Source of the DNA: Salpingoeca rosetta | Lineage: Eukaryota; Protista; Choanoflagellata | Direction of reading: 5' to 3' | DNA length: 64,000 bases | Assembly: GCA_033442325.1 (NCBI GenBank) | Contig: JAWQFM010000032.1 | Coordinates: 1-64,000, forward strand | Program-made: the position numbers and the translations under genes | Shown: one piece after another, positions 21,491-25,400 of the stretch | How the letters are laid out: every line of letters starts with the position of its first letter | Position numbering within the stretch: the stretch's first letter is position 1 | Notes under the pieces: generated by a model | Databases searched by the model: none | Seen by the model: the letters and a program-made list of their open reading frames with translations, nothing else | Told to the model about the DNA's origin: nothing

Positions 21491-22418
21491 TCGCCATGTT
21501 GTGATGTGTCGTGTCAACTTGTGCACAAGTTGGACGAATGGCTGAATGTCTGTCGATTCCTCTGTCACATTCCTCTTGTTTCCCTTTCTTGCTCTCTTCC
21601 CTTCTCTTCTTCTTCTTCTCTTCTCTTCTCTTCTCTTCTCTTCTTCCCTTCCTTCACTCTCCCTCTCGCCTGCTTGCTTGCTTGCTTATGTCACGCCCTT
21701 CCTGTGCTTGCCTGTTGTTTTCATTGTATGGCCCTGTGTACGGCTGAACACGTTCTTGGTGTGTTTGGTGGATGTGTGCTGCTGCTGCTGCTGTGTGTGG
21801 TTGATTCTGGCTTGTAACTGGAGGGTGCTGTTTTGATGTGCAGAGGGGCTGGCTGTTGTTTGGTTGGCTTGGCTTCATGTTGCGTGTGGGCACTGCTGTG
21901 CGTGTGGATGTGTGTTGGACTGGGAGCGTTGTTTGTGGGTTGTGTGGCGGACCTGTTCTTTCCTCAGTAAATGGCTCGATGAAAATGATGAGACCCGCTT
22001 GACGGTGGTGATGGTGGAGCGGCGGTGATGTTTGTGGTGTTGCTGTGGCTACAGACATTGGTGTGTTGTACCAACCAGGCAAGGCCAAACGAGGAGGGCG
22101 GGGCTGTTGTTCCTTTCGGCGACAAAGCGAGTCGGGTTGTTTTGCTGGCTGGCTGGAGGCACTTCATCCTGTTTGTTTGTTCTCGAAGAGATTGTTGACG
22201 AACATCTTCCACGGAAGCGCTGGTGTGCGGATAACCTCTGTAAGGTTTTGCGAATCGTCCAATGGCCGAGTCGCAAAACAACAACACACAAAACAAACAA
22301 AGAAGAAGGAAAACAAACAAAGCAGCGCGTTGAGTTGTCGTCCTCCATTTTGTCGTCGTCTTCCCACTCACGAGCACGTCACAACAAGCCACAAGGAGAA
22401 AGACGACGCGCCATCGCC

Positions 22419-25400
22419 ATGTCCGGCGGAGACAACAGAGCGAGGGAGGAGGTGGAGGCGTTGCTGGCGCAGACGAAGGTGACGGATTGGGTGAAGAACC
22501 GGATCAGGGCCATCGCCAACAACACGTGTGGGGAGATAGCAGAGTGAGTGCAAAGGCAACCAAAACGACATGCATGTTGGAACATGCATGCATGTGGTGG
22601 AGAGAAGGACACTTCTTGTGGTTGTGCTTGTGCTTATTCTCCCTCTCTCTCTCTCTGCTTGGCTTGTCCTTGTGTTGCAATGAGCTTGGTGTGGCTTGCT
22701 GTTGGGTGTTCACGTGTGCGTGTCCTGTCCCCTCGCACCGCCCGGACACACTGTGTGTGTTTGTGACAGGTTGTGACTGGCACCCTCATGTTTTTGCTCT
22801 GTGTATCCTCAGTCTTCTTGCTCATTTCATGACATACCATTTGAAATTGCAGCTTGGGTCGTGATGGCCTCGGCGACATTGGGGCGCGTGCGGTGGCCGA
22901 GGCGCTCAAGGACAACACCTGCCTCAAAGGACTCGCGTGCGTGGTGATGATGAATCTGCATCGTGTGACATGCATGGTTGATTGGGATGGCGGTGTTGCA
23001 CGTTGCGCCCCTTTCCTCCCCTGCTTGCGCATGTTTGGACGTGTGTTCACCGTCGCTCCCTGCGGTTCTTGTGTGCCTGCACAGCCTGTGGGACAATTCC
23101 ATCGGCGATGAGGGCGCTGTGGCGTTGGCGGAGATGCTGAAGCACAACACGACCCTCACAGGACTCGAGTGAGTGTGTACACACACACACACATGCACAT
23201 GTATGCTGCGTCACTGCCGTTGCACCTTATCATGTGCACATGTGTATGGGTGCAACGACTGTGTTGTCACCCACATGAATCATCATCACGCACTCACTCA
23301 CTCACTCTTCCTCACCCATGTGGCATCATCCCTCTGCGTGGCATCATACCGTCTTGACAGCCTGTGGCGCAATTCCATCGGCCCTGAGGGCGCTGTGGCG
23401 TTGGCGGAGATGCTGAAGCACAACACGGCCCTCGAACAGCTCTTGTGAGTTTGAACACACACGCATGCACGAAGGCACCCGCTTTGAGCATGTGTGCATG
23501 TGGTTGTGCACGTCTGCAGCAGGCGCGCTGGCTGTTTGCCACCCCATGTGCTCGCCGCCCCCATCCCTCCTGCTCACCACCGCGTATGCTGTCACTGACC
23601 TCCCACTCCTCACTCCTCTCTCTTGTGTGTACACAGCCTGATGAGCAACCGCATCGGTCCTGAGGGCGCTGCGGCGTTGGCGGAGATGCTGAAGCACAAC
23701 ACGACCCTCGAAGAACTCTAGTGAGTGTGGACACGCACACATGCACATGTATGCTGCGTCACTGCCTGTTGCACCTTTATCATGTGCACATGTGTGGATT
23801 GATGACTGTGTTGCCACCCACAACAATCATCATCACGCACTCACTCACTCTTCCTCACCCATGTGGCATCATCCCCCCGCGTGGCTTCCACCATACCGTC
23901 TTGACAGCCTGAACAACAACTCCATGGGCGATGAGGGCGCTGTGGCGTTGGCGGAGATGCTGAAGCACAACACGACCATGACATGGCTCGAGTGAGTGTG
24001 GACACGCACACATGCACATGTATGCTGCGTCACTGCGGTTGCACCTTATCACGTGCACATGTGCCCATGTGTGGATTGATGACTGTGTTGCCACCCACAG
24101 CAATCATCATCACGCTCTTCCTCACCCATGTGGCATCATCGCCCTGTGTGGCATCCACCATACCGTCTTGACAGCCTGAACAACAACTCCATCGGCGATA
24201 AGGGCGCCGTGGCGTTGGCGGAGATGCTGAAGCACAACACGACCCTCGAAGAACTCTAGTGAGTGTGGACACGCACACATGCACATGTATGCTGCGTCAC
24301 TGCGGTTGCACGTTATCATGCGCTCATGTGTGGTTGATGACTGTGTTGCCACCCACAACAATCATCACTCGCGCACTCAATCACACTTCCTCATCCATGT
24401 GGCATCATCGCCCTGCGTGGCATTCACCATACCGTCTTGACAGCCTGTACAACAACCGCATCGGCGATGAGGGCGCTGTGGCGTTGGCGGAGATGCTAAA
24501 GCACAACACGGCCCTCGAAGAACTCTAGTGAGTGGAAGCTCCTCTTTGCAATGTGTGTCTTTAGGCGCTTCTTCTGCAATACCCATGTGCAGATCAAGGC
24601 ACCGCAAGCCACCCACGATGTCTGTGCGACTTGCTTGTTTGTCCAACCAACAAATGCTTCCATCCTTCATATGTGCCACAAGTGCTGTCACATCCTGTGC
24701 AACTGGCATTTTCCCCCTTTGCTTCCGCCATTGTGACTTCAATGTCGTAGGACCTGATGTGCGAGCGAGTACACGTGCACGTGATCCATCTGCAACCCAC
24801 TTTCATCCATGACACTGACACGTGTTGCTTGCCCACCCGTTCCCCTGCTCTTCCAACATGCATTTCTTGCCACTTGCAGCTTGGATAACAACTCCATCAC
24901 CCCGGTTGGCGGTGCGGCGCTGGGTGCCGCACTGGACGAAAACCGCACGCTGTCTCGGCTTGAGTACGTCGATTGCGTTGCGCCTGCCTCATGAACGCCT
25001 GTGTCCTGTTGTGGATTTGTGTGACCAATCGCCACTCTTTTGAGTGCACGTCACACTGTGTGTTTTCCTCTTTACTTGCTTGTATTTCTCCACAACCCTA
25101 ACCACCAACCCTCCTGACCCACACACCGCACTTGCTGCCTGTTCCCAACCACACGCTACCACCACGTGTCCTCGTTCAGCATCGAGAAGAACTCCACCGC
25201 CACCGCCCGCGCCTTTGGTGCCGCGCTGCCCGTCGACCGCGTGCTCGATACAGGCAACTGGTCAGTCCACGTGTGCTTCCCCTTCCTGTCATGCGCTTTC
25301 TCTCTTCTCTTAACCCTTTTTTCTCACGTGCTGCGTTCTGGTTGCGTCTCATCTCGTGTGCGCACAGGTTCGGCGACGATGAGCGCAACGTCTTCAACGA

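Follow-up and report, generated by a model that had tools for sequence, protein, structure and literature searches.

A 64,000-nucleotide stretch of DNA from the choanoflagellate Salpingoeca rosetta (contig JAWQFM010000032.1, positions 1 to 64,000), here called the window, contains an array of short exons that each encode one leucine-rich repeat (LRR). Six such exons, E1 to E6, each exactly 84 bp long, lie at 23085-24527. They probably constitute the variable middle of an N-terminal LRR sensor of the ribonuclease inhibitor (RI)/NLR type, in a gene family that would diversify by in-frame recombination of exon cassettes and by selection on one face of the encoded protein. The diversification is an evolutionary one, taking place in the germline and across the gene family, and nothing shows a generator operating within one cell or one gene.

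Structure of the cassette array

Each of the six exons is preceded by AG and followed by GTGAGT. The first base of every exon is the third base of a split codon and its last two bases open the next one, which makes all the flanking introns phase 2, and the original prediction that these 84-bp, phase 2-2 exons are swappable in frame was borne out for E1 to E6 without exception. One 28-residue RI/NLR-type repeat is encoded per exon, L-x-x-N-x-I-G-x-x-G-A-V-A-L-A-E-M-L-K-H-N-T-x-L-x-x-L, and the strings that had been read at its two ends, from LWDNS to LYNNR on the 5′ side and from TLTGL to ALEEL on the 3′ side, match the translations exactly (Table 2). Tandem Repeats Finder described the array as 5.3 copies of a 267-bp period. 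Two diverged 84-bp LRR exons, E0 and E7, flank the array, and all eight LRR exons of the window fit the 28-residue period LxxLxLxxNxIGxxG followed by an amphipathic helix, a Pfam LRR_6-like pattern. The reading frame is open from the ATG at 22419 through the cap exon to 26289, by way of splice joints seen in RNA contigs.

Most of the introns had been described as nearly identical. This holds for I1, I3, I4 and I5, which are 183-192 bp long with pairwise identities of 91-96% and are here termed class A, but not for I2 and I6, which are unrelated to these four and represent other intron classes. All eight LRR exons of the window begin with a C, as do 51 of the 52 central cassettes examined in the family, and which residue the split codon encodes therefore depends only on the upstream exon. 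The proposal that exon order creates new surfaces must be modified on this point: a change of order re-pairs half-strands, with three variable residues coming from each exon, but no new residue is made at the junction, the first base being C.

A gene family with varying cassette number

A search with the LRR part of PTSG_13043 showed that at least 17 annotated S. rosetta paralogs share the 5′ LRR module. Ten paralog loci (L002-L011) were fetched from the S. rosetta assembly GCA_000188695.1, to which the PTSG names refer, and all of them displayed the same cassette structure, with 2-9 intact central cassettes per locus. The 84-bp, phase 2-2 cassette exons were found in the window and in 11 paralog loci. 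The paralogs share one layout: the header is followed by an initial LRR whose type is the same throughout, then by 'NSIGDEGAVALAEMLKHNTTL' cassettes in a row, and lastly by the terminal LRR and the cap. Beyond the cap they carry either Ank-ROC-COR-TIR-SAM-like parts (group A) or ROC-COR-PARP parts (group B). PTSG_13043 has the N-terminal header of the family and is 64% identical in its ROC to the ROC frame of the window. A word search with the ROC open reading frame of the window identified an S. rosetta paralog that is 34% identical and whose locus also has 84-bp phase-2 LRR exons. Because the LRR module is fused to Ank-ROC-COR-TIR-SAM-like or ROC-COR-PARP parts, the members of the family may be considered candidate cytosolic innate-immune or surveillance receptors.

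The summed contig depth in an independent DNA run was 2,000-25,000 over 22300-25254 and approximately 200 from 25255 onwards. Depth is not a copy number, and only as a pointer does it suggest some 10-35 copies of the module and about 100 copies of the cassette core. A decayed, frameshifted and truncated sense-strand cassette located within an intron of L009 (3752-3796) is a relic of cassette loss. No decayed cassettes were detected in the window, and no antisense copies in the 11 loci.

Several other features of the loci were recorded. Some arrays have been amplified locally: L011 (3542-5921) holds about four repeats of the two-cassette unit LKSSR/LDNND, L005 has two copies of the terminal LRR exon (5219-5302 and 5686-5769), and two introns in L006 (4488-5680) are identical, with 0 differences in 194 bp. 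The gene model of PTSG_13066 (P0198) apparently reads through introns. Upstream of the window ATG, paralog homology (90-99%) reaches at least 600 bp (21800-22418), and the family thus also shares this region, presumably its promoter.

Variation on the predicted binding face

Variation among the 52 central cassettes is largely restricted to a few codons. The number of different residues seen is 14 at codon 2, 9 at codon 3, 5 at codon 5, 4 at codon 25, 11 at codon 26 and 10 at the split codon 28, and the remaining 22 codons mostly take 1-3 residues each, codons 8 and 9 taking 5. The six codons that vary coincide exactly with the x positions of the LxxLxLxxNxI motif.

The fold was examined in PTSG_10661, a paralog with the same cassettes, and not in the window's own protein. 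The AlphaFold model of its residues 1-290 (predicted local distance difference test, pLDDT, 88.3; predicted template modelling score, pTM, 0.86) has one strand and one helix per repeat and forms the curved beta/alpha solenoid of RI/NLR LRR domains. Its best matches in the PDB were the LRRs of NOD2 (31-35% identity), NLRP3, NLRP14 and ribonuclease inhibitor, with E values of about 1e-13 to 1e-9. The strands in the model comprise codons 26, 27, 28, 1 and 2, where codons 26, 28 and 2 alternate with buried leucines, and codons 25, 3 and 5 are located in the adjoining loops.

Differences were counted by the Nei-Gojobori method as differences per non-synonymous site (pN) and per synonymous site (pS), separately for the face codons and the core (Table 1).

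Table 1. Differences per site at face and core codons of the central cassettes and in class-A introns.
Comparison	Face pN	Core pS	Core pN	Intron difference
52 cassettes, all pairs	0.536	0.161	0.075	
31 class-A introns, all pairs				0.108
Six window exons alone	0.48	0.10	0.06	
15 non-overlapping nearest-intron pairs	0.49 (106/217)	0.134	0.053	0.059 (161/2727)

By bootstrap, face pN was 2.8-4.0 times as high as core pS. Among the 15 nearest-intron pairs the face exceeded the introns with a Fisher p of about 1e-59, whereas core pN was no different from the introns, and even in pairs whose introns are less than 3% apart the face pN was still 0.32. The focus of the variation on the predicted ligand-binding face, as originally proposed, was thereby supported (face pN 0.54 against a core pS of 0.16 and 0.11 in introns), and an excess of non-synonymous change at the exposed positions was found by the counting method in the 52 cassettes from the sampled loci. 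A neutral history cannot give such an excess, since the face codons touch introns on both sides. The numbers suggest either that change on the face has been driven by selection or that old face diversity has been protected while introns and cores were homogenised; both would require selection for diversity.

Exchange between loci

The class-A introns do not cluster by locus. Their mean distance is 0.110 within and 0.107 between loci, and the nearest relatives of I4 of the window are introns in L003 and L004 (2.7-2.8% different) and not its neighbours in the array. When the region from 21800 to 25260 was scanned in 120-bp steps, the best-matching paralog switched every 100-200 bp, and homology faded thereafter. 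A tract of 330 bp covering parts of E2 and I3 and the whole of I2 and E3 is 100% identical to L005 on another scaffold (Table 2). This tract probably originated in a very recent ectopic conversion or crossover, an assembly chimera being less likely. The LSENS 5′ block occurs five times in three loci, together with three different 3′ blocks, and the strands were distinct at 31 of the 33 junctions. A block-level four-combination test for recombination gave no complete sets, because there were too many block types for the sample.

The mosaic sharing of exons and introns between loci was thus evident from the best-match scan, from the 330-bp tract and from the unclustered introns. Together with the 2-9 central cassettes per paralog, the same observations support the unequal crossover and gene conversion that had been put forward as the source of the diversity.

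The idea of an introner or mobile intron was rejected. The class-A intron has four copies in the 64-kb window, all of them in the array, and in the paralog loci it is found only between cassettes, which argues that it is not mobile.

Chromosomal location

Each of the ten paralog loci is situated 0-62 kb from a scaffold end, towards which its 5′ LRR module is directed. Scaffold GL832983.1 has one paralog at each of its ends, PTSG_09099 and PTSG_09285. Most telomeric supercontigs of S. rosetta were reported in the genome paper to share repeated subtelomeric regions (PMC4054682).

Transcription and splicing

The stranded raw RNA reads are on the + strand, as expected for the window gene, and the splice from E2 to E3 is documented by six raw RNA reads and one RNA contig. 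As many as 339 of the 391 placed raw RNA reads are only 95-99% alike to the window, and most of the reads therefore stem from paralogs. Odd RNA joints, leading from E0 to E2 and from E4 or E3 back to E1, carry replaced letters and are therefore derived from paralogs whose cassettes are ordered differently. Among the RNA reads, which are swamped by those of the paralogs, none showed an exon-skipping joint that could be assigned to the window locus.

The reference gene models of S. rosetta were refined with RNA-seq (PMC4054682). Every genomic cassette is included in 7 of the 10 paralog models, and intact in-frame cassettes are left out of the remaining three: two in PTSG_13103 (L005), five in PTSG_08728 (L006) and four in PTSG_09099 (L011). 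These omissions may equally reflect real skipping or collapsed short-read transcript assemblies. The pattern is not one of mutual exclusion as in Dscam, E2 being spliced to E3 and the annotated paralog proteins holding 2-9 consecutive cassettes.

Gene organisation around the array

The features of the window gene and of the unit following it are listed in Table 2. An in-frame TAA at 31147-31149 ends the frame of the LRR gene, at the place where the group-A paralogs also end. The ROC-COR-PARP unit starts 190 bp past this TAA and has no ATG, LRR, cap or other upstream exons of its own. Pfam Roc was detected downstream of the TAA at 31334-32437 with 38.3 bits (cut-off 27), and the COR-A match reached 33.5 bits, which is below the cut-off of 35.3, in a region sharing 82.5% identity with the COR part of PTSG_08728. 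The unit may be a 5′-truncated paralog, or it may be joined to the LRR gene by an unseen splice. Because the LRR frame stops at the TAA before the ROC-COR-PARP unit, the gene of the window array cannot be taken as an established Roco protein, unlike the clear LRR-ROC-COR paralogs.

Table 2. Features of the LRR gene and the following unit in the window.
Feature	Position	Strand	Remarks
Shared 5′ module (upstream region, exon 1, LRR array, cap exon)	21800..25260	+	Homology of about 85-100% with paralogs of other scaffolds; blastn in sliding windows, 7 paralog loci
Exon 1: ATG and 41-codon N-terminal header MSGG..RAREEVEALLAQTK..IRAIANNTCG, phase-2 end	22419..22543	+	Header common to family proteins
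E0, first LRR exon, 84 bp, diverged type ARAVAEALKDNTCL	22853..22936	+	Position conserved in paralogs
E1, central cassette LWDNS...TLTGL, split codon D	23085..23168	+	
I1, class-A intron, 192 bp	23169..23360	+	
E2, central cassette LWRNS...ALEQL, split codon F	23361..23444	+	
330-bp tract, 100% identical to L005 4013-4342, scaffold GL832991.1	23400..23729	+	Mid-E2, I2, E3 and 9 nt of I3; flanks about 85-92%
I2, separate-class intron, 192 bp	23445..23636	+	Only in the window and L005 (PTSG_13103) among eight loci compared
E3, central cassette LMSNR...TLEEL, split codon Y	23637..23720	+	
I3, class-A intron, 187 bp	23721..23907	+	
E4, central cassette LNNNS(M)...TMTWL, split codon D	23908..23991	+	
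I4, class-A intron, 183 bp	23992..24174	+	
E5, central cassette LNNNS...TLEEL, split codon Y	24175..24258	+	
I5, class-A intron, 185 bp	24259..24443	+	
E6, central cassette LYNNR...ALEEL, split codon Y	24444..24527	+	
I6, class-B intron, 352 bp	24528..24879	+	Precedes terminal LRR exon; length of 348-352 bp and sequence conserved in group-A paralogs compared
E7, terminal LRR exon NSITPVGGAALGAALDENRTL	24880..24963	+	Conserved across paralogs
Cap exon EKNSTATARAFGAALPVDR	25180..25260	+	Paralog homology stops inside; joints and loose ends at 25239
TIR-like part (29973-30632) and SAM-like C-terminal exon (30850-31146)	29973..31149	+	tblastn with PTSG_11207; matches group-A paralog C-termini
ROC-COR-PARP unit	31340..34420	+	Matches residues 212-1101 of group-B paralog PTSG_08728 (tblastn); Pfam Roc, COR-A below cut-off, PARP

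Further LRR exons of 84-90 bp, of a different and diverged type, are located at 27869-28564 in the unique middle of the gene; a 3187-nt RNA contig extending from about 25259 to beyond 28159 covers them. On the minus strand, a 510-residue open frame at 34837-36369 displayed a weak Trypsin_2 match (22.6 bits, below cut-off). The 5′ part of a small-subunit (SSU) rRNA gene is present at 1-841 on the minus strand, cut by the window start, which places the receptor gene approximately 21 kb from the rDNA.

Evolutionary scenario and alternative explanations

The evolution of the array may be depicted as follows. Two short hypervariable blocks are enclosed by nearly identical sequence, approximately 185 bp of intron and approximately 57 bp of exon core, and it is because of this arrangement that cassettes could be exchanged in frame. 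Homologous recombination in the conserved stretches would add, delete and exchange cassettes, within an array or between paralogs at chromosome ends, and would also re-pair the two halves of each beta-strand. Selection would favour, or at least preserve, differences at the six predicted solvent-exposed positions, which are codons 25, 26 and 28 of one exon and codons 2, 3 and 5 of the next.

A number of points weigh against this scenario. The selection test was a simple counting of differences in short, recombining sequences; the choice of nearest-intron pairs biases the intron distance downward, although the excess over all pairs is still 3-5 fold; and old face diversity kept while conversion homogenises introns and cores would produce the same numbers as fast positive selection. 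The sample consisted of the window and 10 paralog loci, and the cassette number at the window locus is the one given by the assembly. By tblastn with the paralogs, the window LRR gene has no Ank-ROC-COR between the LRR and the TIR-like part. No telomere repeat was found in the 64-kb window, and the term subtelomeric refers to the distance from scaffold ends and to the genome paper.

Repeat proteins often arise with tandemly duplicated exons, change is tolerated at exposed residues, and core pN/pS is only 0.39-0.55, which could speak for an ordinary recent duplication of LRR exons under relaxed surface constraint and with no adaptive meaning. Such an origin is very unlikely, as neutral change cannot exceed the neutral rate and the non-synonymous difference on the face is 3-5 times the synonymous and intron differences over all pairs and 8 times in the nearest pairs. 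Moreover, where flanking introns are no more than 1.6-3% apart, the strands between them still differ at 5-9 of their roughly 14.5 non-synonymous sites, and the nearest relatives of the window introns sit in other loci and not in the same array. It is scarcely credible that the array or its copy number is an artefact of mis-joined paralog reads in a Sanger/454 assembly: the cassette units differ by 5-15%, enough for the placement of Sanger reads, and this architecture recurs at ten other loci with other sets of cassettes. Judged from depth, the genome holds the module many times, there are 100-N gaps nearby and the 330-bp tract is matched in full on another scaffold, all of which would be in line with an artefact, but the E2-I2-E3 join is matched without mismatch by independent DNA contigs and spliced RNA reads, even if the L005 copy could supply these too.

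Regulated alternative splicing yielding many isoforms per array is compatible with recombination and selection on the face, and any subset of the cassettes is skippable in frame by virtue of their length and phase. As the main generator of diversity it is nonetheless unlikely. Splice isoforms occur in brown-algal ROCO genes (PMC11378527), and the models of PTSG_13103, PTSG_08728 and PTSG_09099 omit intact cassettes, but a collapse of near-identical repeats in short-read transcript assemblies would mimic skipping, and the other seven models are complete. The joints that skip or go back point to paralogs by their replaced letters, none being assignable to the window locus, and the class-A introns are all alike and offer no obvious selector element. 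Programmed or somatic rearrangement, with copying into an expressed site as in the lamprey VLR, would be extremely improbable in a germline gene that is already an open frame with canonical introns, whose paralogs are complete genes and for which no incomplete acceptor was found. Donor-like cassettes are indeed numerous at the chromosome ends, conversion tracts are short and one of them is 100% identical to another locus; the DNA contigs of an independent run, however, match the window mostly at 99% or more, and no DNA-specific rearrangement joint was seen, the single 4.3-kb 'skip' joint in DNA having a 21-nt side in a TG repeat.

In-frame recombination of cassettes together with selection on the predicted face remains the preferred explanation. 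An extension of it, which we regard as speculative and rather unlikely, is that the LRR arrays at chromosome ends act as a contingency system, where frequent mitotic or meiotic ectopic recombination, possibly with cassette skipping, would provide clonal lineages with different receptor repertoires. If true, this would represent an anticipatory recognition at the population level, coupled to the putatively NAD-consuming TIR and PARP effector domains, that predates the animal NLRs and uses the same LRR class.

Comparison with known systems

In animal NLRC and NLRP genes the LRRs are encoded by modular in-frame exons of 84 or 171 bp. The S. rosetta cassettes share fold and repeat class with the LRRs of the animal NLRs NOD2, NLRP3 and NLRP14 and with ribonuclease inhibitor, the unit being a strand and a helix of 28 residues. 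Unlike the animal NLRs, the S. rosetta family has no NACHT domain, and the switch module of the paralogs is ROC-COR. The LRRs of plant NLR or R genes have hypervariable xxLxLxx residues under diversifying selection, and clustered paralogs undergo unequal crossing-over and gene conversion. The concentration of variation at predicted solvent-exposed beta-strand positions and the recombination among paralogs in S. rosetta are similar, whereas the plant LRRs are mostly encoded in large exons, are of another LRR class and are combined with a nucleotide-binding module. In the VLR genes of lamprey and hagfish, the var genes and the VSG genes, rearrangement or switching takes place inside a single individual or clonal line. 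Exchange of short tracts between LRR cassettes or between chromosome-end paralogs, giving new binding surfaces, is a trait in common with these, but S. rosetta shows evolutionary exchange only, and its germline genes are complete. The incomplete germline gene of VLR-type somatic assembly was not found, the window frame being open from the ATG through the array.

The NLR-B30.2 genes of zebrafish are a large family shaped by duplication, exon shuffling and gene conversion, and the members located off chromosome 4 tend towards chromosome ends (Howe et al., bioRxiv 10.1101/027151). Unlike in S. rosetta, their LRRs are not variable, and it is the B30.2 domain that carries the selected variation (bioRxiv 10.1101/027151). 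Choanoflagellates were in a survey reported to be without most of the animal cytosolic immune sensors, including NLRs of animal architecture (PMC6040629). A description of the S. rosetta LRR-cassette family was not found in the literature searched; the text of the genome paper is silent on LRR or Roc genes, and its supplements list them only in expression tables, with low expression (PMC4054682).

Here, S. rosetta is seen to hold a sizeable and fast-diversifying family in which the LRR class of the animal NLRs is combined with a ROC-COR switch and with TIR-like or PARP parts. In population-genetic terms the family bears the marks of receptors for pathogens or ligands, namely gain and loss of cassettes, exchange between loci, a hypervariable predicted face and a position near chromosome ends, and it is of solid interest for the question of how animal innate immunity arose. 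Because S. rosetta is genetically tractable, a pre-animal receptor role is directly testable.

The closest parallel is found in the ROCO genes of the brown algae Ectocarpus and Saccharina, where each LRR of 24 residues is encoded by one 72-nt phase-2 exon and the number of such exons varies (Zambounis et al. 2012, PMC3341825; Teng et al. 2024, PMC11378527). Splice isoforms, gene birth and death and positive selection acting on residues of the concave face have been described for these genes (PMC3341825, PMC11378527), and the parallel with Ectocarpus drawn in the original prediction was apt. Both systems have one LRR per exon, an exon of repeat length, phase-2 introns, a cassette number that varies among paralogs, an excess of amino-acid change on the concave face, and the birth and death of genes, and in both the family context is LRR-ROC-COR and a function as immune receptors has been proposed. 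The S. rosetta exon differs in being 84 bp long and in encoding a 28-residue repeat of the RI/NLR type, and the host is a choanoflagellate within the Holozoa and not a stramenopile. Moreover, the S. rosetta loci are, unlike the algal ones, situated near scaffold ends in one orientation, have paralogs with TIR-like or PARP parts, and contained, in the loci read, one decayed sense-strand cassette and no antisense relics. The mechanism is not new, because the brown-algal ROCO genes show it. Different are the lineage (a choanoflagellate), the LRR class (RI/NLR, 84 bp), the position at chromosome ends and the partner domains, while the logic of the shuffling was already known.

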